Shown: piece after piece, positions 8,727 to 64,000 of the stretch | How positions within the stretch are numbered: position 1 is the first letter of the stretch | Layout: each line of letters starts with the position of its first letter | Origin: Heterodontus francisci | Taxonomy: Eukaryota | Assembly (NCBI RefSeq): GCF_036365525.1 | Contig: NW_027141363.1 | Location: forward strand, 1,240,001 to 1,304,000 | Reading direction: 5' to 3' | DNA length: 64,000 bases | Position numbers and translations under genes: made by a program | The notes under the pieces: model-generated | Database searches by the model: none | What the model saw: only the letters and a program-made list of their open reading frames with translations | Told to the model about the DNA's origin: nothing

Positions 8727-10234
8727 TAATAGTCAAAATACACACACACAGCAGTGCAATTTGTTGTACTTTTAAATGGTGAGACAGAAATATTTCATAG
8801 CTATTTTCAGTTAACATCACATATGAGATAGAAGGACAAAAACAGATATGGACAGAGAGAGAGAGAGAGACAGGAGAGAGAGAGAGATACAGAGCCAGAC
8901 ACACACTGGTGGAGGGAACTGTCTGAACCCTTTTAGTCTCTGGTTTATTAGCTGTGATTTGTTTGTATTTGCGTGCTGCTGAGAGAGTGTCTGTGTAACC
9001 AAAGTCAATTCCTGGGTTCTTGCTGTGATATTTTCTTTAACAATGCCTTTTAATCAATTTTCTCTCTCTCTTGCCTTAGGAATTTTCACTCACACACACA
9101 CACACACACACAGATTTTACATTCCATACTGATGTTAGTAAAACTGGCCAACAGAAGCTCAGTAACAATCCCCAGTGTCTGCCCAGTCCTGAGAGAGAGA
9201 TATAGGGAGTGACAGAGAGAGAGAGAGAGAGAGAGACAGTGGAAGAGGGAATACAAAACAGCTTGTAGGAGAAACTTGACATTTATTTGTGTTCCACAGA
9301 TTTTATTAAAAAGTTGCAAGGGACTAGACACTGCAAAAGCTGTCAGTGCACAACAACAAGAAGAAGCCTGAGAGACTTTAGAAGTGGGAGAAGGGGGGGG
9401 AGAAACTTTAAAATCCACACTGATGTCAGTTAAAAATCCCCAAACACAACCTCAGTATTAATCCCCATTATCTGCTCAGTCCTGTCTTGTGGGGTTTAGT
9501 GTCAAGGTTTTTAGTGGGTGAGAGTGTTGGATCAGTCTTTCCAATTTTCAAACAGCAAGGAAAGAGTTAAAGGTTTTAAAGTGAACTAAGAGATAGCTGA
9601 AAGCAATTGCTGTGCTGGGATTAACATATGAAAGGACTGGAAGAGTCAGGAAGGTTCTGTCCTGGGATTAACATATCAATGGACAGGCTCTAGCAGGCAG
9701 AGAGATTGAGAGACAGCCCAGCAGTCTGTTTCAGTGTGAGGTGAGGGTGAGGGGGAGATCTCTCTCTCTCTCTCTCAATCTGCTTTATAAACTGTGATTT
9801 GATTCAGTTTGAATATTGCTGATGTCTCTGGAACTGAGAGAGGAAACCCTGGGCTCTTGCTGTGCGAATTCGTTTTAAAATGTCCTCGCTTTGGATTTAA
9901 AATGCAATGTGTTTTTTTTATTTTTGTTTCTCTCTCTTTCCTTCTTTGCCTGGAGGAATTTTCATGGTGAAAACTGCATGGTGAAGGTGGAAAGAGGGAA
10001 AGTTTGGCGATGAGCAATCCCTTGGACAGGACCTTCCTGCAGAGGGGACAGAGTGAGGCCTTGTCCACAGGCTGCAGCCCAGTGGCTCCACGTGAGTTGT
10101 GTCGCTTTGTATCAGCGGCCCAGCTTTCATTTTCCTCTCTGGGGCAGCGAGGAAATGAAACCTGGGCAAAGGTGAAGGTGTCTAAAGGCTTGTTTCAATT
10201 GCCCCAATAAAGCTGCTGTTTGTGGGCAGTGCCT

Positions 10235-10520
10235 TGAACCGGAGGCTGAAATGAAACGTTCAGCAGTCATTTTAACCTGACAGTGAGTTGGGAGAGTGGA
10301 TTTCTCTCTCTCTCTCTGAGTGGAGTGAGTGAGTGAGTGAGTGAGAGAGAGGCAGGAGAGTGAGAGAAACATGGATGGAATCAGAGGAGTGGAGGGAGTG
10401 AGTGAGGGAGGAAGGGAGGGGGGTAGCTGCCTGTTATCACACTGCTGCTTGTGGCATGTTACTGTTCACAAACAGCCTGCAGCTTTTCTAACATTGTAAT
10501 AGTGACAAGCACTTGAAAAA
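10235..10520 (+). repeat. Single diverged monomer of the 292-bp satellite
   Basis: Collinear with the satellite monomer but with many substitutions: TGAAATGAAACGTTCAGCAGTCATTTTAAC...GAGAGTGGATTTCTCTCTC...TAGCTGCCTGTTATCACACTGCTGCTTGTGG...ACAAACAGCCTGCAG. Confidence 0.85.
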
Positions 10521-10529
10521 ATTAAAAGA

Positions 10530-10660
10530 TTCAACAACAACCTCAGCAGGATAAACAGCAACAAATGCAAGAACAACTTCAACAGGGAAAACAGCAACAA
10601 AGTCAACAACAACTTCAGCAGGAGAAAAAAACAACAAATTCAACAACAACTTCAGCAGGA
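10530..10660 (+). repeat. CAA-rich minisatellite (CAACAACAACTTCAGCAGG...)
   Basis: Several imperfect ~35-bp units. The copy in the second cassette is about one unit (36 bp) shorter. Confidence 0.75.
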
Positions 10661-10799
10661 TCTGCACGTTGTCTGTTCGTGGGATCTTGCCTTGTAGAAA
10701 CTGGCTGCCACACTTGCTGCATTACAGCAGTGGCTGTACTTCGAAACAGTAGCAAAGAATATGGGAATAGCAAAACATATGAGATTAGCAAAACTGTGA

Positions 10800-11100
10800 G
10801 ATCTTGGGCTTCATAAATAGAGGCACTGCCTACAAAATATGGGAAGTTATGCTGAATCTTTATAAAGCTCTAGTTGGGCCACAACTGGACAATTGCATCC
10901 AGTTCTGCACACCACACTTTAGGAAGGAGGTGAGTTTCCTTGAGAGGGTGTGGAGGAGATTTACCAATATGGTTCCGGGGATAGGGGATTTTAATTACAA
11001 GGTTAGGTTGGAAAACCTGGAGAAAATGAGATTGAGTGGAGACCTGATAGAGGTGTACAAGATTGTGACAGGTTTAGATGAGGATCACAAAGGAAAGCTG
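10800..11100 (+). mobile_element. CR1-clade LINE, ORF2 C-terminal fragment
   Basis: The translation GFINRGTAYK..EVMLNLYKALVGPQLDNCIQFCTPHFRKEVSFLERVWRRFTNMVPG..RLSGDLIEVYKI matches the typical CR1 ORF2 C-terminus (LYKALVRPHLEYC...LERVQRRFT...RGDLIEVYKI). Confidence 0.85.
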
Positions 11101-11184
11101 CTCCTCACCCAGGAGTCAGTTCCCCAGTTCCACTGACTAGTCCCACAGTGTTGGTGTTCCTGCTCCTCGCTCCAGCTGCAGGGA

Positions 11185-11690
11185 AGTTACAGCACAGAAA
11201 CAGACCATTCGGCCAGACACGTCCATGCAGGCCTTTTTGGTCCACACGAACGTCGTTCCACGCCCACTTCATCTCGCCACAAGCCACATCTCCTTCTGTT
11301 CCTCTCTCCCTCATGTCCTATGCAGCTTCCCCACCCCCACCCCCCAGCTTAAATACATCTTGCCTATTCCCCTCAGCCTGTGGTAATGAGTTCCACATTC
11401 TCCCCACTCTCTGGGTGAAGATGTTTCTCCCGAATTCCCAATTGGATTTATTGGTGACTGTCTTATATTGATGACCCCTCCCCCTTTTTCTGGACTCACC
11501 CGCAAATGGAAAAAATCTTCTCTACATTTAACTGATCAAAACCACTTTCATAATCTTAAAGAGCTCTATCAGGTCACTCCTCAGCCTTCTCTTTTCTGGA
11601 GAAAAGAGCCCCAGTCTGTTCAGTCTTTTCCTGATCATTATAACCTCTCAGTTCTGATATCATCCTTGAACATCTTTCTGTGTCTTCTTC
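11185..11690 (-). mobile_element. CR1-clade LINE 3' fragment (antisense)
   Basis: Reverse complement of the CR1 3' region: ACAGCACAGAAACAGACCATTCGGCC, GAGTTCCACATTCTCCCCACTCTCTGGGTGAAG, CTCTATCAGGTCACTCCTCAGCCTTCT. Confidence 0.75.
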
Positions 11691-11777
11691 ATGTCGAAGA
11701 CATGTTCACACTGCAATAGATAAACCAAACAGGATACAGAGCTGCAGGCTTTTATCTGAAACAGGTGTTTCTGTTGG

Positions 11778-11816
11778 TGTTTTTGTTGAACTGCTCCATC
11801 TCTCTGAGTCACTGTG
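11778..11816 (-). other. 23-RSS of TRBV segment V1 (CACAGTG-23 bp-ACAAAAACA)
   Basis: Heptamer 11810-11816, 23-bp spacer 11787-11809, nonamer 11778-11786, immediately after the codons for CAWSQ. Confidence 0.95.
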
Positions 11817-12112
11817 CTGACTCCAGGCACAGAAATACAGCGCCGAGCGATTCTCCTGCAGGCTGGAGGACTCCAGGTTGAACTGGGAACCAGTCGGTCG
11901 TTTGGCAGTGAAACCCTCCACCGTCCCCTCTGAGTTCACACTTGGTGTAACTGCGGAGTAAAACATCAGCCGCAGCTCCTTCCCCAGGTCCTGTCTGTAC
12001 CAGAACATGTAACCGCTACTCTGGCCCTCCACACGGCACTCCAGTCCCACTCCCTCCCCAGGAAATCTGGAGACGGCGGTGGGAGTCTGGTGGACCCTCG
12101 CTGAGATCGCGC
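11817..12112 (-). CDS. TRBV: T-cell receptor beta variable segment V1, V exon (CAWS-type, TRBV30-like)
   Basis: After the acceptor TTCCTTCAG: AISARVHQTPTAVSRFPGEGVGLECRVEGQSSGYMFWYRQDLGKELRLMFYS...FNLESSSLQENRSALYFCAWSQ. It has the Ig V-set Cys, WYRQ and YxC motifs, an open frame and a 23-RSS. Confidence 0.92.
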
Positions 12113-12272
12113 CTGAAGGAAGAGACCGGGAGAGAAGAAGGTCAGTGAACAGGGACAATCTGGGATGTGAAGAATTAAGGAACGAGAGAACGATAGAGAG
12201 AAAGAAAATAAGAAAGACAGCTGTTGACACAAATAATGGGGGTGTGGGGTGGTGGTGAGAAAGATCCCTTAC

Positions 12273-12309
12273 TTTGAAATAAGACCATGAGACTCAGTAA
12301 CAGATACAT
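12273..12309 (-). CDS. TRBV: Leader exon of V1 (MYLLLSLMVLFQ)
   Basis: ATG at 12309, hydrophobic peptide and phase-1 donor A|GTAAG. It splices in frame to the V exon across a 160-bp intron. Confidence 0.85.
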
Positions 12310-12469
12310 CTTTCACTGGAAGCTGAACCTGCAATTGGGAAATCAGTGGAAAGAAGAGAGTTGAGTCTTGTGAGAAGCCACATGAAGACTCAAGCAAGTG
12401 ATTGAGGTTTGCCCAACACCTCCCTCCCTGATGGGGAACCCACGCCCCTCTCTCTACCATTGGCTGCCA

Positions 12470-13085
12470 GTAGTTGCTGTTGCATTTGTTGGTATCATTC
12501 TGCTGCTGAAGTTGTTGTTGTATTTGTTGTTGTATTTGCTGGTGTTTTTCTCCGACTGAGGTTGTTGGATTTGTTGTTGCTTGAATCTCCTTCTGAGGTA
12601 GTTGTTGTAATAAAAGCAAAATACTGCGGATGCTGGAAATCTGAAATAAAAACAAGAAATGCTGGAACCACTCAGCAGGTCTGGCAGCATCTGTGAAAAG
12701 AGAAGCAGGATTAAAGTTTCGGGTCAGTGACCCTTCATCGGAACTGACAAATATTAGAAAAGTCACAGGTTATAAGCAAGTGACGTGGGGGTGGGGCTAG
12801 AGGTAACAAAGGAGGTCTAGATTGGACCAGGCCACATAGCTGACCAAAAGGGCACGGAGCAAAGGCAAACAATATGTTAATGGTGTGTTGAAAGACAAAG
12901 CATGAGTACAGATTAGGTGTTAATACACTGGTGGAGGTAGTTGTTGTTTTTGTTGGTGTTTTCCCCGCTGAGGTTTTAGTTGTACTTGGTTCCTTCCCTG
13001 CTTAAGTTGTTGTTCAATTTGGTTTTTGCATGTTGAGGTTGTTGTTGTATTTTTTGGAGTTTTTTTTCCCCTGCTGAGTTTATTT
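12470..13085 (-). repeat. Antisense copy of the CAA-rich minisatellite, interrupted by a Penelope-like fragment
   Basis: TGCTGAAGTTGTTGTTG and CTGAGGTTGTTG units at 12470-12608 and 12930-13085 are reverse complements of the units at 10530-10660. Confidence 0.7.
12610..12930 (-). mobile_element. Penelope-like retroelement terminal fragment
   Basis: AAAAGCAAAATACTGCGGATGCTGGAAATCTGAAATAAAAACA...CAGGTCTGGCAGCATCTGTG resembles an abundant shark repeat end. The minus strand carries a hammerhead-like core, CCGATGAAGGGTCACTGACCCGAAAC. Confidence 0.6.
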
Positions 13086-13094
13086 TCTCTTTTT

Positions 13095-13270
13095 CAATTC
13101 ATTCATGAGATTTTGGTTGAGGCCAGCATTTATTGTCCATCCCTAATCATCTAATTGAGAAGGTGGTGCTGAGCTGCCTTCTTGAACCGCTGCAGTCACG
13201 TGGGGTAGGTAAACCCACAGTGCTGTTAGGAAGGGAGTTTCAGGATTTTGACCCAGTGACAGTGAAGAAA
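13095..13270 (-). mobile_element. LINE 3' end fragment (same family as 17695-18215)
   Basis: Reverse complement of 18040-18210 (TTCTTCACTGTCACTGGGTCAAAATCCTG...CTCCCTTCCTAACAGCACTGTGGG). Confidence 0.75.
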
Positions 13271-13324
13271 CTGTCTTGGCCCCAAAACAAGGCAGCAGGT
13301 TGACGGGTCTTATTGGGTCATAGT

Positions 13325-13620
13325 GTCATGCAGGTCAAATCCAGGCCATTCAGCCCATCGATCCTAGCCTGGCAGCTCGAAAGAGCGACCTCCTCCCATC
13401 TTTCTTCATCTTACCCTATCAACAGATTCTTCTATTCCTTTCTCACTCATGTATTTATTCAGCTCCCCCTTAACTGCATCGTCTCTATTCGACCTCAACC
13501 CATTCCATTTGGTCTGTAATTCCACATTCTCACCGCTCCCTGGGTTAAAGAACCTCCTCCTGAATTCCCAATTGGATTTATTAAGTACTACCTTACATTT
13601 ATGATCCCTGGTTTCCATCC
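13325..13620 (-). mobile_element. CR1-clade LINE 3' fragment (antisense)
   Basis: AGGCCATTCAGCCCATCGA, TTCCACATTCTCACC and CTCCTGAATTCCCAATTGGATTTATT are related to the fragment at 11185-11690. Confidence 0.65.
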
Positions 13621-14316
13621 TCCCTGTCCAATTGTTCCCACTCCCTGTTCTTTCTGAATAACCCTGCACTTGATCTTGCAGCTTGTCTGCCTCCTTCCCA
13701 ACATTACAACAGTGACTGCACTTCAAAATGTATTTGACTGTTTGAGGCTGGAGTGAAGCAGAGAGCTGTGGGGCCGAATGGCGCGGATCTGTGCATTGAC
13801 TTTCATCTGGTTCTGTGCCACAAGCGCCAACACGAGTCGAGTTGGAGAATATAACTAATGACTGAAACAGGTTCAGGGTCTGACACTGAAACGCCTGCAG
13901 AATCGGTACTTGCAGTTGCAGCTGGAGCCACTAGGTGCCAGTGTTACTCCACTGTCGCCGCTGCCCAGAACATGCTCAGACAGAGTGAGCTTTCCCCACA
14001 GCAGCTCCACAGGTCAACTTGGCTGCTTCTGAAATGTTTCACTTCTCAACTATTTGACAGACACACACAAAAAAAAGCAGTTAGACTTCATCATGTTTGG
14101 TCTTTAATATTGACCAGAGGCCCCCCGGATTCCCCTGAGGCCTCCTTCGCTCAGCCCCGGAAATGACCTGTCAACATGTCAACATGTGGGAACCAATGAA
14201 CCATCAGGAAGTTGCCCCTCCCCCCGCCTCCCCCCCAATGGGAACATGAAACACTGGGGAGGAGGGGACAGTAAATGTCACTCAGAACATTGAGATATTC
14301 TGCAATAAAGCAGCTC

Positions 14317-14326
14317 AGTGATTTCA
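14317..14326 (+). promoter_or_regulatory. Candidate TRBV promoter decamer (CRE-like) AGTGATTTCA upstream of V2
   Basis: One mismatch to the mammalian TRBV decamer AGTGAYRTCA, about 35 bp upstream of the V2 ATG. Confidence 0.4.
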
Positions 14327-14360
14327 CACAATGAACACATGGATCTGTCTCCCTCCAGAG

Positions 14361-14403
14361 ATGACTGTGTCTCACCTCTGGGTTGTGTTACTGGTGTTAA
14401 GGG
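14361..14403 (+). CDS. TRBV: Leader exon of V2 (MTVSHLWVVLLVLR)
   Basis: ATG at 14361, hydrophobic core and phase-1 donor G|GTAAGG. In frame with the V exon at 14962 (..LR-D-VGA-VLIQQTP). Confidence 0.85.
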
Positions 14404-14961
14404 GTAAGGTGGAACTGGACTGGGAGCTGTCAGTCATCCTCACTGCTCTTTGCCTGTGTGACCCCATTGGGGGTTTACCCCCTTACTAGGCACCGTCACT
14501 GTGATTGTTAATTCAGCTGCTCTCTTTCTCGTTTTGAATTCCTTTCTCTCTCCCCCTCTCTCTTTCTCTCTGTCTAACGATATATGTACCTCTATGTCTG
14601 TCCTTCCCACTCTCCTTTTCTTTCTGTCTCTCTTGCTCTCTCTCCCTGTCCTCTTAGTTCCTTCATGTATGTTGCCCATGCATAGATTGTTGCTGTGTTT
14701 CTCCCTCTGTGTGTTTGCTTCCCCCTCTCTCTCTCTGTCTCTGCTTCTCTCCTTTTCTCTCACTCTTTTTCATTCTCTCTCTCTCTCTCTCTCTGTGCAT
14801 CTCCCCGTCTCCCACCTCTCCCTTCTTACATAGGAACACGGGACATTGAGAACACACAGGAGGTCATTCAGCCCATCATGCCTCTCCCCTCTTTGTGGCC
14901 GATGTCAATTTAAACATTGTCTCTGGGTTTATCTTTCTCTCTCTCTCTCTCTGTTTTACAG

Positions 14962-15260
14962 ATGTGGGGGCCGTGCTGATACAACAGACTCCCGCTTCCC
15001 TATCCCATTCCCCAGGTTCTCCAGTCAGTATCCAGTGTATTTACCCTGAAGCAACAGCTGGCTCCTATTTCTACTGGTACCGGTGGCATCTGGACCGTGA
15101 GCCCGAGAACCTTTTCTATTCCAACGTCCCCGGAACGGTCATTCCCTCCGGTGAGGTGGACGGTTTCACCGCCAGGAGACCCGACAACACCCATTTTTAC
15201 CTGGAGTCCTCCAGCCTGTGGGCGAATCAATCAGCCGTGTATTACTGTGCCTGGAGTCAG
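14962..15260 (+). CDS. TRBV: T-cell receptor beta variable segment V2, V exon (CAWS-type)
   Basis: After the acceptor CTGTTTTACAG: VGAVLIQQTPASLSHSPGSPVSIQCIYPEATAGSYFYWYRWHLDREPENLFYS...FYLESSSLWANQSAVYYCAWSQ. Open frame, followed by an RSS. Confidence 0.92.
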
Positions 15261-15299
15261 CACAGTGACTCAGAAAGGCGCCGGAGTTCAGCAAATACT
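15261..15299 (+). other. 23-RSS of V2 (CACAGTG-23 bp-GCAAATACT, non-consensus nonamer)
   Basis: Perfect heptamer at 15261-15267 and a 23-bp spacer. The nonamer has three mismatches to ACAAAAACC. Confidence 0.88.
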
Positions 15300-15334
15300 C
15301 TAAAGGGGGAGGAAAGCACTTGTGGGAGATAAAC

Positions 15335-15700
15335 CTGTCTGTCTATCTCAGTGTCTTTCTGTCTCTCGGACTATCTGCGAGTTTCTGTGTCTCTTTGTGC
15401 GTCTCTGCATCTATCTATCTGTCTATCTGTCTATCGATCTGTATCTATCTATGTCTATCTATCTTTCCATCTATCTACGTGTCTATCAATCTATCTATAA
15501 ATCTATCTGTATCTATCTATCTTTGTGTTTACCTGTCTGTCTGTCTGTCTCTCTGTCTCTATCTATCTATCTGTATCTATCAATCCATCTGTATCTATCT
15601 ATCGATCCATCTGTATCTATCTATTTATCGATCTCGCTGTCCATTTTTGGTTATTTGCACCATTTATCTATCTATTTATCTCGATCATATATATATATTT
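15335..15700. repeat. Degenerate (TCTA)n/(TCTG)n microsatellite
   Basis: Seen directly in the sequence. Confidence 0.9.
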
Positions 15701-16394
15701 GTCATCTCTGTCTCTCACAGTTTCATCTTCTTGCTCTCCTTCGACTCAGAGTACATCAATACATTATGAATTATTAAAAATGCTGCAGCAATGTGCTCAG
15801 ATCCTTCTCGTTAAGGCAGCCTCTACCTGTAAAGAACAGATTCCGAGGTGGGGTAAATGGGTTCATGGTCCTGTTGAATGAGCTGTCGGTGGTTTTTGAC
15901 AAGAGTTACACATAGCTCCCTGTTGTACATGTCCCCAATGATTCATACAATGCAAAAGTGAGACACCTCCCCAGATAGGTCTCTCACTGGAACACCTGCC
16001 TCCTGACGGCGGTTTGAGCATCTGTTCAAAACAGTTAACCCACTTCTTCATGACACTGTCGCTTTTCAAAGTATCTAAGATTTCACCCCAATGTAAAACA
16101 TAACCCTTGAATTGTCGTTTAGCACAGGGGAAATAACTTTTGATCTGCCGAATACAAACAAGCAACTTAATGTGCCTTATATATTTATAGAATCCTACAG
16201 CAGAGCCGAGGCCATTCAGCCCATCGAGCCTGGCCCGGCTGTTCGAAAGAGCTACCCTTCAACACCAATCAGACACAAGCAACGGGAGCCAGATACAGAC
16301 GGGAAGCAGTTCCTTATTCAAGCTCCTTTCGGCCAGGGGGTGTTATTATTCTGTCATACCCAGAAGTGAGGTGTCAGAAGGAAACCCTGTTTCC

Positions 16395-16404
16395 AGTGCT
16401 GTCA
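16395..16404 (+). promoter_or_regulatory. Candidate TRBV promoter decamer AGTGCTGTCA upstream of V3
   Basis: One mismatch to AGTGATGTCA, about 70 bp upstream of the V3 ATG. Confidence 0.4.
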
Positions 16405-16475
16405 TTTCCGCTCTCTGCTTTATCTTCAGCCGCCTGATATTGGTTCATGAACAGATTCAGCCTTCAGTCTGCAGG

Positions 16476-16521
16476 ATGCAGTTAGTCAAACTCTTCCTAA
16501 TCGTCTGCTCTCTTCTTCCAT
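16476..16521 (+). CDS. TRBV: Leader exon of V3 (MQLVKLFLIVCSLLP)
   Basis: 46-bp exon with phase-1 donor T|GTAGGT. In frame with the exon at 16991 (C-KTLA-EVIHQWP). Confidence 0.87.
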
Positions 16522-16990
16522 GTAGGTATTCATTGTTCATAAAGATACCTGTGCTAAAATACATGCTGTGTTTTCATTCACTGCTAACTTCTATCAAACT
16601 AGATTGATAAAACATCATTGCAGTCGATTTTCTGTCATTTCTTAAACTACATACTTTACTTTCACTGTAAATAATATTTACTTAATGAAATTGTTGACTG
16701 AATGAAAGTTACTTATATATTCGTGACGCTACTACAGCTATCTTTAACCGATAAGTTTGCCCTAATTCTGGGTTAATTTGTCTCTCTCATGTCACTTGCT
16801 ACATTATTTTTCAGTCACTATATCTATCTGTTTATTATCTATATATCTACCAATATATCATTTAACTATATATTGTCTGCCTATATAGTTATCTAGTATT
16901 ATCTAATTATCTATTTTGATAGTTATAGTTGGTTATCATATGTCACAATATGTTCTAAACTTTTTTAAACTATTCTCCTTATTTCTCAAG

Positions 16991-17292
16991 GCAAAACTCT
17001 AGCAGAGGTGATACACCAGTGGCCAACTCTGGTGGCAGTGAAGAGAGGCGAAGCAGCAGAATTAAACTGTTACCAGAATGACAGTAGTAAGAGCGTTATG
17101 CTGTGGTATCGGCAGTATGCCGGGCAGGGGCTCACCCTAATGGGCTATTCTTACACTGGAAGCTCACCCACGTACGAAGGAAAATTTGAAGAGGAGGTGA
17201 AGATTATAAGGCCCGAGGACAAACGATGCAGCCTGAGGGTCCTCAAGGTTAAGGCTGTGGATGCGGCGGTGTATTACTGTGCAGCCAGGGAG
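16991..17292 (+). CDS. TRBV: T-cell receptor beta variable segment V3, V exon
   Basis: After the acceptor TTTCTCAAG: KTLAEVIHQWPTLVAVKRGEAAELNCYQNDSSKSVMLWYRQYAGQGLTLMGYSYTGSSPTYEGKFEE...DAAVYYCAARE. Open frame. Confidence 0.92.
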
Positions 17293-17331
17293 CACAGCGC
17301 TGCAGACTGCCTTAGTGCCAGTACAAAAACC
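17293..17331 (+). other. 23-RSS of V3 (CACAGCG-23 bp-ACAAAAACC)
   Basis: Heptamer 17293-17299 and a perfect nonamer at 17323-17331. Confidence 0.95.
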
Positions 17332-17694
17332 AACAGGGTGAACAACACAACTGACTGACATACAGGAGCAGTGACAATGGTTTATGTCTCTCCCTGCCTC
17401 ACCGGCCGTTTTCCAAGCTGGTGATTCCCGGATTCCTGAACCTTCATCATGGGCTGAATGACAGGGAATAGCACAAGGTCCGAGGAACAGAGAGAGAAGG
17501 AAAGAGAGAGATGTGTCTCAGATCCCCTGCAAAATTTCAAAGTCCTCGTCTACACCGTTTAATTTCTGGCACTGAGTATGTTAAAACTGAGTCACAGTCT
17601 CTGTCCTATACTTGATTAATTAAAAGGTTAATTAATGATGTAAATAAGACAGATAGTTTACATCACCATTGTGAAGCGATGGATAGAGTATCAA

Positions 17695-18215
17695 TCATCT
17701 ACAAGGTACAAGTCAGGAGTGTGATGGAATACTCTCCATTTGCCTGGATGATGCAGCTCCAACAACACTCAGGAAGCTCAACACGATCCAGGACATAGCA
17801 GCCCGGTTGTTCAGTACCCCACCTACCACCTTCAACACTCACTCCCTTCACCACAGTGGCAGCAGTGTATACCATCTACAAGATGCACTGCAGCAAAGCA
17901 TCGAGTGTCCTTAGACAGCACCTTCCAAGCCCACCAACTCTACCACCAGAAGGACAAGGGCAGTAGACTCATGGGAACACCACCACCTGCAAGTTCCCCT
18001 CCAAGCAACACACCATCCTGACTTGGAACTATATTGCCGTTTCTTCACTGTCACTGGGTCAAAATCCTGGGACTCCCTTCCTAACAGCACTGTGGGTGTA
18101 CCTCCCCCACATGGACTGCAGTGTTGCAAAAAGGCAGCTCATCACCACCTTCTCAAGGGCAAATAATTGCTGGTCTTGCAAAAGAAATTCACGTCCCATG
18201 AACGAATAAGAAAAA
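17695..18215 (+). mobile_element. Degenerate non-LTR retrotransposon (LINE) 3' fragment
   Basis: The decayed coding sequence IYKVQVRSVMEYSPFAWM..APTTLRKLNTIQDIAARL is typical of the region C-terminal to LINE reverse transcriptase. It ends in an A-rich tail. Confidence 0.75.
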
Positions 18216-18554: not shown

Positions 18555-18555
18555 C

Positions 18556-18881: not shown

Positions 18882-18927
18882 ATGCCTTTCAGTTTCATCG
18901 TCTTTGTTATTTCCCTTCTGGCGCTGA
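18882..18927 (+). CDS. TRBV: Leader exon of V4 (MPFSFIVFVISLLAL)
   Basis: 46-bp exon with phase-1 donor A|GTAGGT. In frame with the exon at 19306 (S-VCRG-DVIHQWP). Confidence 0.87.
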
Positions 18928-19305: not shown

Positions 19306-19614
19306 GTGTTTGCCGGGGTGATGTGATACATCAATGGCCTCAGTCACTGGCTGTTAAACAACCAGGACCCGTGGAAATGAACTGTCTGCAGAAAGGAAAG
19401 ATTCGCGATAACATGTACTGGTATCGTCAGTCCCCCGGCGGAGGATTCCTGTTAATCGGGTTTAACTTTCTAAGCAATGAACCTCAGTATGAAGAGGGTT
19501 TTAAGAGCGGGTTTGTTATTACCAGGACTCTGGACAATAAGAAATCCACTCTGACGATCGAGAGTGTGAACGCCACGGACGAGGCGGTGTATTTCTGTGC
19601 AGCTGGTGATGGGA
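19306..19614 (+). CDS. TRBV: T-cell receptor beta variable segment V4, V exon
   Basis: After the acceptor TTTCTCTTTCTAG: VCRGDVIHQWPQSLAVKQPGPVEMNCLQKGKIRDNMYWYRQSPGGGFLLIGFNFLSNEPQYEEGFKSGFVITR...DEAVYFCAAGDG. The YEEGF motif and open frame are TRBV-like. Confidence 0.92.
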
Positions 19615-19653
19615 CACAGCGGTTCAGAGTCATTGGCCACCTTGACAAAAACC
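19615..19653 (+). other. 23-RSS of V4 (CACAGCG-23 bp-ACAAAAACC)
   Basis: Heptamer 19615-19621 and a perfect nonamer at 19645-19653. Confidence 0.95.
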
Positions 19654-21866: not shown

Positions 21867-22012
21867 TTCAAATCATAACCATTCCACACAAAATAGACAA
21901 TTGGATTTCCCCAAGTCTGCTCGTTCATAGTGACTGGTTTGAGCAACACTTGTGATATACTGAAACAGATGATCTGAAGGAAGTAAAGAGGGGAAGCAAA
22001 GTGAGAAAACAG
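21867..22012. repeat. Left arm of a 146-bp inverted repeat
   Basis: Reverse complement of 23432-23577 with about five mismatches. Confidence 0.92.
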
Positions 22013-23431: not shown

Positions 23432-23577
23432 CTGTTTTCTGACTTTTCTTCCCCTCTTTACTTCCTTCAGATCATCTGTTTTAGTATATCACAAGTGTTG
23501 CTCAAACCAGTCACTATGAACGAACAGACTTGGGGAAATCCAGTTGTCTATTTTGTGTGGAATGGTTATGATTTGAA
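23432..23577. repeat. Right arm of the 146-bp inverted repeat
   Basis: Reverse complement of 21867-22012. It abuts the 94-bp tandem array. Confidence 0.92.
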
Positions 23578-24410: not shown

Positions 24411-24905
24411 AATCAACCTTCCCCGGGCTGCCTATTAAAAGCGGCAAAACTCATTGGAAAGAACCGCAGTCAGAAGTTGAAGTGACAACTCATTAACCAA
24501 AAAAAAAAAGAAGAGTTGGAAGTGGGAAATCATTAACCAAAATGCAAATGCAGAAACTGGTTAATGATTTGTCCACATTTTACAATTGGTTTATGAGTTG
24601 TCACTACAACTTTTCACTGCGGTTGGTTACAATGAGTCTTGCCGGGCTTAATAGTCGGCGTTCGGGGCGTTTTTGCCGAGGAGGCCGTGTTTCCATGCAC
24701 CTTTCCCGGCATGTTTTTGCAAGGTTGGGTCGGTGGTTCATTGATGGGTGTCCGGGTGTCCGGCCAGGGTCTGAGAGCCCATCCTGGGGAGGGTTGAGGC
24801 GGGGGAGAGGGAGAAGGAGAAGGAGAGCCTCCCCTCTTCCTCGGTACCTGTGTCTATGTGAGGACAGGGGCATCCGCCGCTGCTCGATCCAGGCCGGTCG
24901 GACGA

Positions 24906-25376: not shown

Positions 25377-25529
25377 ACTACAACGGGAGTTAATATTTGT
25401 GTTTGAAATGATGGGTGAATCTGATAACAATTCTCTCTCCCCAGAAATGAAGTAAGATTGAGGGACTGGAGTAAAGGTCAGTAATAGTGCAATGTATTTT
25501 CCATGACTTAGTGACAAACTCTGTGTGAT

Positions 25530-54400: not shown

Positions 54401-54776
54401 AGAGAGATGCAGGAGAGTGAGGGCGTCAGAGGGGGAGAGTAGGAATAGCTGGCTGTTATCACACTGCTGCTTGTGGGATCTTGCTGTGTACAAAGAGCTT
54501 GCAGAATTTTCCAACATGACAACAATGAGAACACTTTAAAATTCAGCTTCCTGAGGGTCTGAGTGTGGATTCCTCAGTGTTTTTATCAAGAATTTTGTAA
54601 ATCTGAGGGTGACATGAAACATCCGGCAGCCATTTTAACTTGAGAGTCAGTTCGCAGAGTGGATTTCTCTCTCTGAGCGAGAGGAACAGGAGGGAGAGAG
54701 ATGCAGGAGAGTGAGGGAATCAGAGGGGGAGAAGAGGGATAGCTGGCTGTTATCACACTGCTGCTTGTGGGATCTT
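36420..54776. repeat. ~292-bp satellite array, complete (~18.4 kb, ~63 monomers)
   Basis: Same monomer as 1-8726. It ends at the identical junction GGGATCTT|TAATAG. Confidence 0.97.
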
Positions 54777-56817
54777 TAATAGTCAAAATACACACACACA
54801 GCAGTGCAATTTGTTGTACTTTTAAATGGTGAGACAGAAATATTTCATAGCTATTTTCAGTTAACATCACATATGAGATAGAAGGACAAAAACAGATATG
54901 GACAGAGAGAGAGAGAGAGAGAGAGAGACAGGAGAGAGAGAGAGATACAGAGCCAGACACACACTGGTGGAGGGAACTGTCTGAACCCTTTTAGTCTCTG
55001 GTTTATTAGCTGTGATTTGTTTGTATTTGCGTGCTGCTGAGAGAGTGTCTGTGTAACCGAAGTCAATTCCTGGGTTCTTGCTGTGATATTTTCTTTAACA
55101 ATGCCTTTTAATCAATTTTCTCTCTCTCTTGCCTTAGGAATTTTCACTCACACACACACACACACACACAGATTTTACATTCCATACTGATGTTAGTAAA
55201 ACTGGCCAACAGAAGCTCAGTAACAATCCCCAGTGTCTGCCCAGTCCTGAGAGAGAGATATAGGGAGTGACAGAGAGAGAGAGACAGTGGAAGAGGGAAT
55301 ACAAAACAGCTTGTAGGAGAAACTTGACATTTATTTGTGTTCCACAGATTTTATTAAAAAGTTGCAAGGGACTAGACACTGCAAAAGCTGTCAGTGCACA
55401 ACAACAAGAAGAAGCCTGAGAGACTTTAGAAGTGGGAGAAGGTGGGGGGGGGGGGGAGAGAAACTTTAAAATCCACACTGATGTCAGTTAAAAATCCCCA
55501 AACACAACCTCAGTATTAATCCCCATTATCTGCTCAGTCCTGTCTTGTGGGGTTTAGTGTCAAGGTTTTTAGTGGGTGAGAGTGTTGGATCAGTCTTTCC
55601 AATTTTCAAACAGCAAGGAAAGAGTTAAAGGTTTTAAAGTGAACTAAGAGATAGCTGAAAGCAATTGCTGTGCTGGGATTAACATATGAAAGGACTGGAA
55701 GAGTCAGGAAGGTTCTGTCCTGGGATTAACATATCAATGGACAGGCTCTAGCAGGCAGAGAGATTGAGAGACAGCCCAGCAGTCTGTTTCAGTGTGAGGT
55801 GAGGGTGAGGGGGAGATCTCTCTCTCTCTCTCTCAATCTGCTTTATAAACTGTGATTTGATTCAGTTTGAATATTGCTGATGTTTCTGGAACTGAGAGAG
55901 GAAACCCTGGGCTCTTGCTGTGCGAATTCGTTTTAAAATGTCCTCGCTTTGGATTTAAAATGCAATGTGTTTTTTTAATTTTTGTTTCTCTCTCTTTCCT
56001 TCTTTGCCTGGAGGAATTTTCATGGTGAAAACTGCATGGTGAAGGTGGAAAGAGGGAAAGTTTGGCGATGAGCAATCCCTTGGACAGGACCTTCCTGCAG
56101 AGGGGACAGAGTGAGGCCTTGTCCACAGGCTGCAGCCCAGTGGCTCCACGTGAGTTGTGTCGCTTTGTATCAGCGGCCCAGTTTTCATTTTCCTCTCTGG
56201 GGCAGCGAGGAAATGAAACCTGGGCAAAGGTGAAGGTGTCTAAAGGCTTGTTTCAATTGCCCCAATAAAGCTGCTGTTTGTGGGCAGTGCCTTGAACCGG
56301 AGGCTGAAATGAAACGTTCAGCAGTCATTTTAACCTGACAGTGAGTTGGGAGAGTGGATTTCTCTCTCTCTCTCTGAGTGGAGTGAGTGAGTGAGTGAGA
56401 GAGAGGCAGGAGAGTGAGAGAAACATGGATGGAATCAGAGGAGTGGAGGGAGTGAGTGAGGGAGGAAGGGAGGGGGGTAGCTGCCTGTTATCACACTGCT
56501 GCTTGTGGCATGTTACTGTTCACAAACAGCCTGCAGCTTTTCTAACATTGTAATAGTGACAAGCACTTTAAAAAATTAAAAAATTCAACAACAACCTCAG
56601 CAGGATAAACAGCAACAAAGTCAACAACAACTTCAGCAGGAGAAAAAAACAACAAATTCAACAACAACTTCAGCAGGATCTGCACGTTGTCTGTTCGTGG
56701 GATCTTGCCTTGTAGAAACTGGCTGCCACACTTGCTGCATTACAGCAGTGGCTGTACTTCGAAACAGTAGCAAAGAATATGGGAATAGCAAAACATATGA
56801 GATTAGCAAAACTGTGA

Positions 56818-57118
56818 GATCTTGGGCTTCATAAATAGAGGCACTGCCTACAAAATATGGGAAGTTATGCTGAATCTTTATAAAGCTCTAGTTGGGCCAC
56901 AACTGGACAATTGCATCCAGTTCTGCACACCACACTTTAGGAAGGAGGTGAGTTTCCTTGAGAGGGTGTGGAGGAGATTTACCAATATGGTTCCGGGGAT
57001 AGGGGATTTTAATTACAAGGTTAGGTTGGAAAACCTGGAGAAAATGAGATTGAGTGGAGACCTGATAGAGGTGTACAAGATTGTGACAGGTTTAGATGAG
57101 GATCACAAAGGAAAGCTG
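56818..57118 (+). mobile_element. CR1-clade LINE fragment (duplicate of 10800-11100)
   Basis: Same translation as the first copy. Confidence 0.85.
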
Positions 57119-57795
57119 CTCCTCACCCAGGAGTCAGTTCCCCAGCTCCACTGACTAGTCCCACAGTGTTGGTGTTCCTGCTCCTCGCTCCAGCTGCAGG
57201 GAATTTACAGCACAGAAACAGACCATTCGGCCAGACACGTCCATGCAGGCCTTTTTGGTCCACACGAACGTCGTTCCACGCCCTCTTCATCTCGCCACAA
57301 GCCACATCTCCTTCTGTTCCTCTCTCCCTCATGTCCTATGCAGCTTCCCCACCCCCACCCCCCAGCTTAAATACATCTTGCCTATTCCCCTCAGCCTGTG
57401 GTAATGAGTTCCACATTCTCCCCACTCTCTGGGTGAAGATGTTTCTCCCGAATTCCCAATTGGATTTATTGGTGACTGTCTTATATTGATGACCCCTCCC
57501 CCTTTTTCTGGACTCACCCGCAAATGGAAAAAATCTTCTCTACATTTATCTGATCAAAACCACTTTCATAATCTTAAAGAGCTCTATCAGGTCACTCCTC
57601 AGCCTTCTCTTTTCTGGAGAAAAGAGCCCCAGTCTGTTCAGTCTTTTCCTGATCATTATAACCTCTCAGTTCTGATATCATCCTTGAACATCTTTCTGTG
57701 TCTTCTTCATGTCGAAGACATGTTCACACTGCAATAGATAAACCAAACAGGATACAGAGCTGCAGGCTTTTATCTGAAACAGGTGTTTCTGTTGG

Positions 57796-57834
57796 TGTTT
57801 TTGTTGAACTGCTCCATCTCTCTGAGTCACTGTG
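57796..57834 (-). other. 23-RSS of the V1 copy
   Basis: CACAGTG at 57828-57834, 23-bp spacer, ACAAAAACA. Confidence 0.95.
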
Positions 57835-58130
57835 CTGACTCCAGGCACAGAAATACAGCGCCGAGCGATTCTCCTGCAGGCTGGAGGACTCCAGGTTGAA
57901 CTGGGAACCAGTCGGTCGTTTGGCAGTGAAACCCTCCACCGTCCCCTCTGAGTTCACACTTGGTGTAACTGCGGAGTAAAACATCAGCCGCAGCTCCTTC
58001 CCCAGGTCCTGTCTGTACCAGAACATGTAACCGCTACTCTGGCCCTCCACACGGCACTCCAGTCCCACTCCCTCCCCAGGAAATCTGGAGACGGCGGTGG
58101 GAGTCTGGTGGACCCTCGCTGAGATCGCGC
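57835..58130 (-). CDS. TRBV: TRBV segment V1 copy, V exon
   Basis: Protein identical to that of 11817-12112. The acceptor here is TTCCCCCAG. Confidence 0.92.
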
Positions 58131-58290
58131 CTGGGGGAAGAGACCGGGAGAGAAGAAGGTCAGTGAACAGGGACAATCTGGGATGTGAAGAATGAAACAA
58201 GGAGAGAAAGATAGAGAGAAAGAAAATAAGAAAGACAGCTGTTGACACAAATAATGGGGGTGTGGGGTGGTGGTGAGAAAGATCCCTTAC

Positions 58291-58327
58291 TTTGAAATAA
58301 GACCATGAGACTCAGTAACAGATACAT
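58291..58327 (-). CDS. TRBV: Leader exon of the V1 copy
   Basis: MYLLLSLMVLFQ followed by A|GTAAG. Confidence 0.85.
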
Positions 58328-58627
58328 CTTTCACTGGAAGCTGAACCTGCAATTGGGAAATCAGTGGAAAGAAGAGAGTTGAGTCTTGTGAGAAGCCACA
58401 TGAAGACTCAAGCAAGTGATTGAGGTTTGCCCAACACCTCCCTCCCTGATGGGGAACCCACGCCCCTCTCTCTACCATTGGCTGCCAGTAGTTGCTGTTG
58501 CATTTGTTGGTATCATTCTGCTGCTGAAGTTGTTGTTGTATTTGTTGTTGTATTTGCTGGTGTTTTTCTCCGACTGAGGTTGTTGGATTTGTTGTTGCTT
58601 GAATCTCCTTCTGAGGTAGTTGTTGTA

Positions 58628-58948
58628 ATAAAAGCAAAATACTGCGGATGCTGGAAATCTGAAATAAAAACAAGAAATGCTGGAACCACTCAGCAGGTCT
58701 GGCAGCATCTGTGAAAAGAGAAGCAGGATTAAAGTTTCGGGTCAGTGACCCTTCATCGGAACTGACAAATATTAGAAAAGTCACAGGTTATAAGCAAGTG
58801 ACGTGGGGGTGGGGCTAGAGGTAACAAAGGAGGTCTAGATTGGACCAGGCCACATAGCTGACCAAAAGGGCACGGAGCAAAGGCAAACAATATGTTAATG
58901 GTGTGTTGAAAGACAAAGCATGAGTACAGATTAGGTGTTAATACACTG
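58628..58948 (-). mobile_element. Penelope-like fragment (duplicate of 12610-12930)
   Basis: Same sequence as the first copy. Confidence 0.6.
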
Positions 58949-60378
58949 GTGGAGGTAGTTGTTGTTTTTGTTGGTGTTTTCCCCGCTGAGGTTTTAGTTG
59001 TACTTGGTTCCTTCCCTGCTTAAGTTGTTGTTCAATTTGGTTTTTGCATGTTGAGGTTGTTGTTGTATTTTTTGGAGTTTTTTTTCCCCTGCTGAGTTTA
59101 TTTTCTCTTTTTCAATTCATTCATGAGATTTTGGTTGAGGCCAGCATTTATTGTCCATCCCTAATCATCTAATTGAGAAGGTGGTGCTGAGCTGCCTTCT
59201 TGAACCGCTGCAGTCACGTGGGGTAGGTAAACCCACAGTGCTGTTAGGAAGGGAGTTTCAGGATTTTGACCCAGTGACAGTGAAGAAACTGTCTTGGCCC
59301 CAAAACAAGGCAGCAGGTTGACGGGTCTTATTGGGTCATAGTGTCATGCAGGTCAAATCCAGGCCATTCAGCCCATCGATCCTAGCCTGGCAGCTCGAAA
59401 GAGCGACCTCCTCCCATCTTTCTTCATCTTACCCTATCAACAGATTCTTCTATTCCTTTCTCACTCATGTATTTATTCAGCTCCCCCTTAACTGCATCGT
59501 CTCTATTCGACCTCAACCCATTCCATTTGGTCTGTAATTCCACATTCTCACCGCTCCCTGGGTTAAAGAACCTCCTCCTGAATTCCCAATTGGATTTATT
59601 AAGTACTACCTTACATTTATGATCCCTGGTTTCCATCCTCCCTGTCCAATTGTTCCCACTCCCTGTTCTTTCTGAATAACCCTGCACTTGATCTTGCAGC
59701 TTGTCTGCCTCCTTCCCAACATTACAACAGTGACTGCACTTCAAAATGTATTTGACTGTTTGAGGCTGGAGTGAAGCAGAGAGCTGTGGGGCCGAATGGC
59801 GCGGATCTGTGCATTGACTTTCATCTGGTTCTGTGCCACAAGCGCCAACACGAGTCGAGTTGGAGAATATAACTAATGACTGAAACAGGTTCAGGGTCTG
59901 ACACTGAAACGCCTGCAGAATCGGTACTTGCAGTTGCAGCTGGAGCCACTAGGTGCCAGTGTTACTCCACTGTCGCCGCTGCCCAGAACATGCTCAGACA
60001 GAGTGAGCTTTCCCCACAGCAGCTCCACAGGTCAACTTGGCAGCTTCTGAAATGTTTCACTTCTCAACTATTTGACAGACACACACAAAAAAAAGCAGTT
60101 AGACTTCATCATGTTTGGTCTTTAATATTGACCAGAGGCCCCCTGGATTCCCATGAGGCCTCCTTAGCTCAGCCCCGGAAATGACCTGTCAACATGTCAA
60201 CATGTGGGAACCAATGAACCATCAGGAAGTTGCCCCTCCCCCCGCCTCCCCCCCAATGGGAACATGAAACACTGGGGAGGAGGGGACAGTAAATGTCACT
60301 CAGAACATTGAGATATTCTGCAATAAAGCAGCTCAGTGATTTCACACAATGAACACATGGATCTGTCTCCCTCCAGAG

Positions 60379-60421
60379 ATGACTGTGTCTCACCTCTGGG
60401 TTGTGTTACTGGTGTTAAGGG
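60379..60421 (+). CDS. TRBV: Leader exon of the V2 copy
   Basis: MTVSHLWVVLLVLR followed by G|GTAAG. Confidence 0.85.
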
Positions 60422-60979
60422 GTAAGGTGGAACTGGACTGGGAGCTGTCAGTCATCCTCACTGCTCTTTGCCTGTGTGACCCCATTGGGGGTTTACCCCC
60501 TTACTAGGCACCGTCACTGTGATTGTTAATTCAGCTGCTCTCTTTCTCGTTTTGAATTCCTTTCTCTCTCCCCCTCTCTCTTTCTCTCTGTCTAACGATA
60601 TATGTACCTCTATGTCTGTCCTTCCCACTCTCCTTTTCTTTCTGTCTCTCTTGCTCTCTCTCCCTGTCCTCTTAGTTCCTTCATGTATGTTGCCCATGCA
60701 TAGATTGTTGCTGTGTTTCTCCCTCTGTGTGTTTGCTTCCCCCTCTCTCTCTCTGTCTCTGCTTCTCTCCTTTTCTCTCACTCTTTTTCATTCTCTCTCT
60801 CTCTCTCTCTCTGTGCATCTCCCCGTCTCCCACCTCTCCCTTCTTACATAGGAACACGGGACATTGAGAACACACAGGAGGTCATTCAGCCCATCATGCC
60901 TCTCCCCTCTTTGTGGCCGATGTCAATTTAAACATTGTCTCTGGGTTTATCTTTCTCTCTCTCTCTCTCTGTTTTACAG

Positions 60980-61278
60980 ATGTGGGGGCCGTGCTGATAC
61001 AACAGACTCCCGCTTCCCTATCCCATTCCCCAGGTTCTCCAGTCAGTATCCAGTGTATTTACCCTGAAGCAACAGCTGGCTCCTATTTCTACTGGTACCG
61101 GTGGCATCTGGACCGTGAGCCCGAGAACCTTTTCTATTCCAACGTCCCCGGAACGGTCATTCCCTCCGGTGAGGTGGACGGTTTCACCGCCAGGAGACCC
61201 GACAACACCCATTTTTACCTGGAGTCCTCCAGCCTGTGGGCGAATCAATCAGCCGTGTATTACTGTGCCTGGAGTCAG
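60980..61278 (+). CDS. TRBV: TRBV segment V2 copy, V exon
   Basis: Protein identical to that of 14962-15260. Confidence 0.92.
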
Positions 61279-61317
61279 CACAGTGACTCAGAAAGGCGCC
61301 GGAGTTCAGCAAATACT
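61279..61317 (+). other. 23-RSS of the V2 copy
   Basis: CACAGTG, 23-bp spacer, GCAAATACT. Confidence 0.88.
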
Positions 61318-62493
61318 CTAAAGGGGGAGGAAAGCACTTGTGGGAGATAAACCTGTCTGTCTATCTCAGTGTCTTTCTGTCTCTCGGACTATCTGCGAGT
61401 TTCTGTGTCTCTTTGTGCGTCTCTGCATCTATCTATCTGTCTATCTGTCTATCGATCTGTATCTATCTATGTCTATCTATCTTTCCATCTATCTACGTGT
61501 CTATCAATCTATCTATAAATCTATCTGTATCTATCTATCTTTGTGTTTACCTGTCTGTCTGTCTGTCTCTCTGTCTCTATCTATCTATCTGTATCTATCA
61601 ATCCATCTGTATCTATCTATCGATCCATCTGTATCTATCTATTTATCGATCTCGCTGTCCATTTTTGGTTATTTGCACCATTTATCTATCTATTTATCTC
61701 GATCATATATATATATTTGTCATCTCTGTCTCTCACAGTTTCATCTTCTTGCTCTCCTTCGACTCAGAGTACATCAATACATTATGAATTATTAAAAATG
61801 CTGCAGCAATGTGCTCAGATCCTTCTCGTTAAGGCAGCCTCTACCTGTAAAGAACAGATTCCGAGGTGGGGTAAATGGGTTCATGGTCCTGTTGAATGAG
61901 CTGTCGGTGGTTTTTGACAAGAGTTACACATAGCTCCCTGTTGTACATGTCCCCAATGATTCATACAATGCAAAAGTGAGACACCTCCCCAGATAGGTCT
62001 CTCACTGGAACACCTGCCTCCTGACGGCGGTTTGAGCATCTGTTCAAAACAGTTAACCCACTTCTTCATGACACTGTCGCTTTTCAAAGTATCTAAGATT
62101 TCACCCCAATGTAAAACATAACCCTTGAATTGTCGTTTAGCACAGGGGAAATAACTTTTGATCTGCCGAATACAAACAAGCAACTTAATGTGCCTTATAT
62201 ATTTATAGAATCCTACAGCAGAGCCGAGGCCATTCAGCCCATCGAGCCTGGCCCGGCTGTTCGAAAGAGCTACCCTTCAACACCAATCAGACACAAGCAA
62301 CGGGAGCCAGATACAGACGGGAAGCAGTTCCTTATTCAAGCTCCTTTCGGCCAGGGGGTGTTATTATTCTGTCATACCCAGAAGTGAGGTGTCAGAAGGA
62401 AACCCTGTTTCCAGTGCTGTCATTTCCGCTCTCTGCTTTATCTTCAGCCGCCTGATATTGGTTCATGAACAGATTCAGCCTTCAGTCTGCAGG

Positions 62494-62539
62494 ATGCAGT
62501 TAGTCAAACTCTTCCTAATCGTCTGCTCTCTTCTTCCAT
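62494..62539 (+). CDS. TRBV: Leader exon of the V3 copy
   Basis: MQLVKLFLIVCSLLP followed by T|GTAGGT. Confidence 0.87.
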
Positions 62540-63008
62540 GTAGGTATTCATTGTTCATAAAGATACCTGTGCTAAAATACTTGCTGTGTTTTCATTCACT
62601 GCTAACTTCTATCAAACTAGATTGATAAAACATCATTGCAGTCGATTTTCTGTCATTTCTTAAACTACATACTTTACTTTCACTGTAAATAATATTTACT
62701 TAATGAAATTGTTGACTGAATGAAAGTTACTTATATATTCGTGACGCTACTACAGCTATCTTTAACCGATAAGTTTGCCCTAATTCTGGGTTAATTTGTC
62801 TCTCTCATGTCACTTGCTACATTATTTTTCAGTCACTATATCTATCTGTTTATTATCTATATATCTACCAATATATCATTTAACTATATATTGTCTGCCT
62901 ATATAGTTATCTAGTATTATCTAATTATCTATTTTGATAGTTATAGTTGGTTATCATATGTCACAATATGTTCTAAACTTTTTTAAACTATTCTCCTTAT
63001 TTCTCAAG

Positions 63009-63310
63009 GCAAAACTCTAGCAGAGGTGATACACCAGTGGCCAACTCTGGTGGCAGTGAAGAGAGGCGAAGCAGCAGAATTAAACTGTTACCAGAATGAC
63101 AGTAGTAAGAGCGTTATGCTGTGGTATCGGCAGTATGCCGGGCAGGGGCTCACCCTAATGGGCTATTCTTACACTGGAAGCTCACCCACGTACGAAGGAA
63201 AATTTGAAGAGGAGGTGAAGATTATAAGGCCCGAGGACAAACGATGCAGCCTGAGGGTCCTCAAGGTTAAGGCTGTGGATGCGGCGGTGTATTACTGTGC
63301 AGCCAGGGAG
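63009..63310 (+). CDS. TRBV: TRBV segment V3 copy, V exon
   Basis: Protein identical to that of 16991-17292. Confidence 0.92.
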
Positions 63311-63349
63311 CACAGCGCTGCAGACTGCCTTAGTGCCAGTACAAAAACC
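63311..63349 (+). other. 23-RSS of the V3 copy
   Basis: CACAGCG, 23-bp spacer, ACAAAAACC. Confidence 0.95.
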
Positions 63350-63712
63350 AACAGGGTGAACAACACAACTGACTGACATACAGGAGCAGTGACAATGGTT
63401 TATGTCTCTCCCTGCCTCACCGGCCGTTTTCCAAGCTGGTGATTCCCGGATTCCTGAACCTTCATCATGGGCTGAATGACAGGGAATAGCACAAGGTCCG
63501 AGGAACAGAGAGAGAAGGAAAGAGAGAGATGTGTCTCAGATCCCCTGCAAAATTTCAAAGTCCTCGTCTACACCGTTTAATTTCTGGCACTGAGTATGTT
63601 AAAACTGAGTCACAGTCTCTGTCCTATACTTGATTAATTAAAAGGTTAATTAATGATGTAAATAAGACAGATAGTTTACATCACCATTGTGAAGCGATGG
63701 ATAGAGTATCAA

Positions 63713-64000
63713 TCATCTACAAGGTACAAGTCAGGAGTGTGATGGAATACTCTCCATTTGCCTGGATGATGCAGCTCCAACAACACTCAGGAAGCTCAAC
63801 ACGATCCAGGACATAGCAGCCCGGTTGTTCAGTACCCCACCTACCACCTTCAACACTCACTCCCTTCACCACAGTGGCAGCAGTGTATACCATCTACAAG
63901 ATGCACTGCAGCAAAGCATCGAGTGTCCTTAGACAGCACCTTCCAAGCCCACCAACTCTACCACCAGAAGGACAAGGGCAGTAGACTCATGGGAACACCA
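63713..64000 (+). mobile_element. LINE 3' fragment (duplicate of the element starting at 17695, cut off by the window end)
   Basis: Same sequence as the first copy. Confidence 0.75.

Follow-up and report, generated by a model that had tools for sequence, protein, structure and literature searches.

The question raised by this locus is how a cluster of antigen-receptor variable (V) segments comes to lie twice in a satellite-rich stretch of shark DNA, and whether these segments look fit for use. The window (the whole stretch analysed, 64,000 nucleotides (nt) long) is from Heterodontus francisci, RefSeq assembly GCF_036365525.1, contig NW_027141363.1, positions 1,240,001 to 1,304,000 of the forward strand. 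It carries an island with four V segments, designated V1 to V4, and a block of this island returns near the end of the window. More probably, one recent unequal crossover doubled a unit of about 46 kb, and the V segments on it are functional-looking and working ones. From the evidence given below we infer that the mechanism was a crossover, that these particular copies are used and that they are linked to diversity (D), joining (J) and constant (C) beta segments.

The duplication is seen most clearly when positions 10560-17982 are compared with 56578-64000. These stretches of about 7.4 kb are 99.69% identical, with 23 mismatches, zero gaps and an offset of 46,018. Leftward the near-identity persists to about 7911, with microsatellite length changes that move the offset to 46,048-46,058, and the duplicated block 7911-17982 as a whole recurs at about 53961-64000, that is, to the window end, with identity of about 99.7% and offsets of 46,018-46,058. 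Left of 7911 the syntenic identity falls at once to about 91%, the same as in any other register. The layout of the window is as follows, with recombination signal sequence abbreviated as RSS and Tandem Repeats Finder as TRF.

7911-17982, plus strand: copy 1 of the near-identical block, in the extent comparable within the window, identity rising at about 7911 from some 91% to about 99.7%
53961-64000, plus strand: copy 2 of the block, truncated by the window end
57796-58327, minus strand: V1 of copy 2 (RSS, V exon, leader), identical in coding sequence to copy 1
60379-61317, plus strand: V2 of copy 2 (leader, V exon, RSS), identical in coding sequence to copy 1
62494-63349, plus strand: V3 of copy 2 (leader, V exon, RSS), identical in coding sequence to copy 1
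14-8726, unstranded: satellite array A, about 30 monomers, its start truncated by the window edge (TRF)
23640-35952, unstranded: belt of six tandem arrays with periods of about 95, 182, 29, 30, 30/64 and 30 bp (TRF)
36434-54776, unstranded: satellite array B, about 63 monomers, the final 816 bp or so being the beginning of copy 2

The left edge of near-identity lies 816 bp (2.8 monomers) inside a satellite with a period of 294 bp, which forms array A (TRF: 29.9 copies, 90% matches) and reappears as array B. Its monomers diverge by about 10% from one another, no higher-order repeat was found when arrays A and B were compared, and elsewhere the longest match between the two arrays at 97% identity or more is not over 465 bp. 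Fifteen kb of mostly unique DNA (8727 to about 23600) separate array A from the minisatellite belt. Tandem repeats make up 28,867 of the 46,018 bp of the unit (62.7%), and there is zero N in the window, which places both copies of the island on one contig. The counterpart of V4 would fall at about 65.3 kb, beyond the window end.

None of the 23 copy differences is within the leader, V exon or RSS of V1-V3. V sequence represents 15% of the compared block, which gives P of about 0.02 when each difference is counted and about 0.13 for about a dozen independent events, and this absence of differences is not significant because the independent events are few. A block repeated head to tail, with V genes of more than one family and near-identical counterparts, is what defines a homology unit in V gene clusters, and the shark block has all of these features. 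The first-pass annotation had claimed that the island recurs 46,018 bp further on with protein-identical V1-V3, that both copies follow the same satellite junction, and that two thirds of the unit is satellite or minisatellite; these statements agree with the alignment, with the edge at about 7911 and with the repeat content.

The island is flanked by old, non-homogenised 294-bp satellite arrays, probably derived from a dispersed repeat. The satellite may have grown out of a SINE-like (short interspersed element) repeat, and a solitary element at 10235-10519 inside the island, which is 66-68% identical to the 294-bp monomer, would agree with such an origin. A sharp edge at 7911 inside a non-homogenised satellite can be explained in two ways, by a single unequal crossover or as the end of a conversion tract. 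According to the first of these, the ancestral order would have been satellite A, island, minisatellites and satellite B, and the unequal crossover would have joined a position in B to about 7911 of A. Its product would read B, then the last 816 bp of A, then a second island, and the duplicated unit would be made up of these 816 bp, the island, the belt of minisatellites and satellite B. Two tandem copies would result, their V genes still identical. Such a duplication would be the usual birth step in the birth-and-death evolution of V families. The unequal crossover put forward in the first-pass annotation thus keeps its support in a left edge of the kind that a crossover leaves inside the 294-bp satellite, but a conversion-tract edge fits as well.

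Four V-set domains were identified in the island at 11.8-19.7 kb (Pfam PF07686, E 1e-9 to 2e-12). The RSSs were searched with the pattern CACAGTG-N23-ACAAAAACC, for which about 1.1 chance matches are expected over the whole window. The parts of the four segments in copy 1 and its rightward continuation are listed here.

11778-11816, minus strand: V1 RSS, CACAGTG-23-ACAAAAACA, 1 mismatch
11817-12112, minus strand: V1 V exon, ends CAWSQ, Pfam V-set
12273-12309, minus strand: V1 leader exon, MYLLLSLMVLFQ, phase 1, donor GTAAGG, predicted only
14361-14403, plus strand: V2 leader exon, MTVSHLWVVLLVLR, phase 1, donor GTAAGG, 558-bp intron, predicted only
14962-15260, plus strand: V2 V exon, ends CAWSQ, Pfam V-set, with an RNA contig identical over 15153-15260
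15261-15299, plus strand: V2 RSS, CACAGTG-23-GCAAATACT, weak nonamer, 3 mismatches
16476-16521, plus strand: V3 leader exon, MQLVKLFLIVCSLLP, phase 1, donor GTAGGT, with an RNA contig joint 16521>16991
16991-17292, plus strand: V3 V exon, with VIHQWP and YYCAARE, Pfam V-set
17293-17331, plus strand: V3 RSS, CACAGCG-23-ACAAAAACC, 1 mismatch
18882-18927, plus strand: V4 leader exon, MPFSFIVFVISLLAL, phase 1, donor GTAGGT, 378-bp intron, predicted only
19306-19614, plus strand: V4 V exon, with VIHQWP and YFCAAGDG, Pfam V-set
19615-19653, plus strand: V4 RSS, CACAGCG-23-ACAAAAACC, 1 mismatch

A 23-spacer RSS abuts every V coding end, with the mismatches given in the list, and a hydrophobic leader exon precedes each V and ends in phase 1 at a GT donor. 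When V1-V4 were aligned, both cysteines and the W-Y-R and Y-x-C-A motifs were invariant, and the frames are open without stops. V1-V4 therefore carry the marks of T-cell receptor (TCR) beta V genes (TRBV), namely a V-set domain with the conserved residues, a split phase-1 leader and an abutting 23-spacer RSS. The last of these is common to alpha, delta, gamma and immunoglobulin heavy chain (IgH) V segments too and does not identify the chain. Because their pairwise identity is only 24-45%, the four segments represent different families; V3 and V4, which both start VIHQWP, are 39% identical. V1 is coded on the minus strand, head to head with V2 and opposite to V2-V4, so that V1, or else V2-V4, must join by inversion.

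The four intact segments with leader, V exon and 23-spacer RSS that had been reported in an island of about 15 kb are borne out by the Pfam matches, the RSSs, the leaders and the V3 splice described below, with the minus-strand position of V1 as an addition. A six-frame search of the whole window with a hidden Markov model (HMM) built from V1-V4 found these four and the three of copy 2, and no further V segments or pseudo-Vs. As already noted in the first-pass annotation, no D, J or C was found in the 64-kb window: matches to a 12-spacer RSS are no more than expected by chance, and a J-type FGxG motif is absent.

Several observations touch the signals themselves. The V1 and V2 RSSs (11778-11816 and 15261-15299) both read CACAGTGACTCAG, and a perfect AP-1 site, TGACTCA, straddles the heptamer-spacer border in both of them, while V3 and V4 are without it. 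Within the satellite, 36 RSS-like matches with 3 mismatches were found, compared to about 1 expected in the whole window; they are one monomer motif (CACACTG, a 23-nt spacer, then ACAAA...) and were rejected as V segments. This motif recurs in many of the 294-bp monomers (14-8726 and 36434-54776), which creates co-oriented cryptic 23-RSS-like arrays beside the real V segments. A match with 1 mismatch to the mammalian V-beta promoter decamer was found upstream of V2 and V3 only and was discarded as too weak for use.

As to the receptor chain, the best single-domain PDB matches of V1 and V2 were Mel5 TCR beta chains. The Mel5 TCR uses TRBV30, and the CAWS with which both segments end would be in line with this; by sequence V1 and V2 resemble mammalian TRBV30-type genes. 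The PDB sequence search for V3 returned a mixture of alpha, beta and antibody heavy-chain V domain (VH) matches. Its AlphaFold model (predicted local distance difference test score, pLDDT, 79.6) was placed by Foldseek with alpha-beta TCR entry chains at ranks 1-11, with 29-34% identity, and several of the titles name a V-beta gene, TRBV20 (Vbeta2) or Vbeta6. Antibodies are in large excess in PDB, and the TCR chains rank first for the V3 fold despite that excess. V4 is different, as both by PDB sequence and by fold antibody VH or single-domain VHH came first, with the first TCR at rank 33. Neither V1 nor the V4 open frame drew any vertebrate relative in protein homology searches, which hence gave no shark TCR reference for chain assignment. 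Judged by sequence matches for V1 and V2 and by the predicted fold for V3, V1-V3 appear most like TCR beta V domains. The TCR-beta identity that had been assigned to the whole cassette was accordingly narrowed to V1-V3; for V4, antibody VH is at least as good a match.

Evidence for use comes from sequencing runs, in which both DNA and RNA are in the form of contigs; runs X5 and X9 share their sample with the DNA run that best covers the stretch. RNA contigs give depth over the V exons, with zero depth over the V3 intron and the intergenic bins. One X5 contig is spliced from 16521 to 16991 (GT..AG, 469 nt), and X5 is therefore RNA and the V3 leader is confirmed. It disagrees with the window at 7 of 338 positions, so its source may be an allele or a near-identical paralogue. 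A 186-nt contig of run X9 agrees with V2 at every base of 15153-15260 (108 nt), and the match ends exactly at the final V2 coding base before the heptamer, the other 78 letters being from elsewhere. Another RNA contig departs from V3 at 17289, 3 nt short of the end. V(D)J-joined transcripts would be expected to leave the germline at just such points, and the departures at the ends of V2 and V3 suggest joining of this kind. V1-V4 are functional-looking, and would be working V(D)J substrates and not relics, because their V-set domains, leaders and RSSs are intact and RNA contigs leave the germline where joining would occur.

The same contigs carry variation that is not in the window. DNA contigs of the sample that gave X5 and X9 are about 0.5-2% different from both copies and have letters found in neither, e.g., at 15894, 15896, 16372 and 17053. 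Provided that the assembly was made from this same animal, they point to at least a third version, either the other haplotype or further copies. Over the V1 exon (11794-11987) the DNA k-mer depth is about 5-fold that of the surrounding unique island DNA and reaches about 10-fold at single sites. At position 11857 most contigs, and every V1-type RNA contig, have C where the window has T. The raised depth and the C at 11857 place V1 in a family of which several near-identical members lie elsewhere. Between V1 and V2, at 12570-13350, k-mer depth in DNA and RNA contigs is 10^5-10^6, whereas the bins on either side have about 10^2, which marks a dispersed repeat that is very abundant and transcribed. 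Contigs of run X6, from another sample (organism B), cover intergenic island DNA at 13295-16219 with about 94-97% identity, the RNA label of this run being a guess, and a related animal or species therefore has the same island.

Other explanations of the two copies can be weighed against these data. It is unlikely that the duplication is older, or that the two copies belong to an array of more than two units, with gene conversion or recurrent unequal exchange preserving the identity of the island alone, which would then serve as a copy-number-variable reservoir in concerted evolution. Such a history would explain the sharp edge at about 7911 equally well as the end of a conversion tract, and the copy differences are clustered (10562-10588, 12176-12191 and 14126-14148) as patchy conversion can leave them. 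The contig letters absent from both copies would be in line with it as well, provided that the sample is the assembled animal, but they may equally belong to the other haplotype or to family members elsewhere. Two copies only are in view, and frequent whole-unit unequal exchange would be expected to homogenise the satellites, which are not homogenised. The k-mer depth of the V exons, several-fold above that of unique island DNA, points to dispersed family members and not to amplification of whole units. Somewhat more doubtful is the proposal that the unit is one of several satellite-bounded V cassettes whose number differs between sharks. If true, satellite-mediated unequal exchange would set the germline dosage of V genes, and hence their share of the T-cell repertoire. 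An assembly artefact, with two haplotypes of one locus strung together via the satellite tangle, is quite improbable. The copies do diverge by only 0.2-0.3%, within the allelic range, in a satellite-rich region prone to misassembly. However, both lie in one gap-free stretch, the join is between monomers about 10% different, for which a false read overlap is unlikely, and the contig divergence from both copies suggests that the other haplotype is a third version if the contigs are from the assembled animal. Slightly less probable still is a V-only orphon array outside the TCR beta locus (TRB), or another locus such as alpha/delta with VH-like Vs, unused for beta chains. The window without D, J or C and the VH-like V4 would be as expected there. 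Against it stand the break with germline sequence in RNA contigs at the coding ends of V2 and V3, the intactness of all four Vs with usable RSSs, and the closeness of V1-V3 to TCR beta V domains.

The single recent crossover with working V segments has its own weak points, and these are best taken together. The right-hand end of the duplicated block is beyond the window, and the edge at 7911 could equally end a gene-conversion tract. The usable runs are contigs, which give no depth by which an artefact could be recognised. RNA contigs over V1 and V3 differ by 1-2% from the window, and near-identical paralogues or alleles may be expressed instead of the window copies. The use of V2 and V3 with C beta is not proven by these contigs, and V4 matches antibody VH at least as well as TCR beta. 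With these points counted, one unequal crossover that doubled the unit is still the more probable origin.

Some other elements were found on the unit to the right of the V segments. An inverted repeat at 21867-22012 and 23432-23577, with arms of 146 nt that are 97% complementary and 1419 bp apart, looks like DNA-transposon ends or a foldback element, judging by its arms. A G+C-rich repeat of 182 bp at 24898-25376 (2.6 copies, 97% identity) is within open frames of 117-170 codons, which had zero Pfam matches. Eight open frames of the island, other than those of the V segments, also had zero Pfam matches.

Cartilaginous fish are the oldest lineage with V(D)J receptors, and the locus represents a young V-gene duplication in this group and a clean example of V-family growth. 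The literature searched yielded no paper that describes a shark TRB locus in comparable detail, and the region needs an assembly and copy-number check before a shark TRBV catalogue is taken at face value.

Among known systems, gene-bearing macrosatellites such as D4Z4/DUX4 have many units that are homogeneous over the full length and vary in number. The shark locus is similar to them in having a kilobase-scale, gene-containing unit repeated in tandem. It is unlike them in that two units are visible and the satellite parts are only about 91% alike, so that homogeneity does not extend over the full length. The terms "amplified" and "macrosatellite" of the first-pass annotation are not shown to apply, as the window contains two copies, the second of them truncated at 64000. 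"Homogenised" does not hold, since the flanking arrays, at about 91% in the syntenic register, are no better matched there than in other registers. A second comparison is the human TRBV orphon cluster on chromosome 9, whose orphons are unused. The shark V segments are similarly without D, J and C nearby, but to judge by the RNA contigs they appear to be spliced and to take part in V(D)J joining.

The closest counterparts are the tandem homology units of human and bovine TRB, which are 7-31 kb long and carry 1-11 TRBV genes of several subgroups (PMC2685407). Many TRBV pairs in these units are identical in coding sequence, and unequal crossover was proposed for them (PMC2685407); the earlier premise that TRB V genes have usually diverged was therefore too strong. 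As in human and cattle (PMC2685407), the shark block is repeated head to tail, has V segments of several subgroups, and its counterparts are identical in coding sequence. It differs in the length of the unit (about 46 kb compared to 7-31 kb), in its 63% of tandem repeat and in the two units seen. The edge of the shark unit is inside a satellite, whereas unit boundaries in human and cattle rarely hold repeats (PMC2685407).

Joining of an inverted V by inversion, as needed for V1 or else for V2-V4, is standard in mammals (PMC11264764; PMC10464911). As with mammalian TRBV30 (TRBV31 in mouse; PMC11264764), V1 is oriented opposite to the V segments next to it, and the CAWS ending is shared by V1 and V2. 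In mammals TRBV30 is present as one gene, located downstream of the last C, while V1 is head to head with a paralogue in a V cluster with no C in view, and the likeness of V1 and V2 to TRBV30 is a resemblance by matches and by the CAWS ending. A multi-V tandem duplication is the ordinary way in which V-gene families grow, and the known picture of V-repertoire evolution is unchanged by this one. What sets this locus apart from the human and bovine units is that it is from a shark, that its unit is so rich in repeats, and that one edge can still be read inside a satellite.

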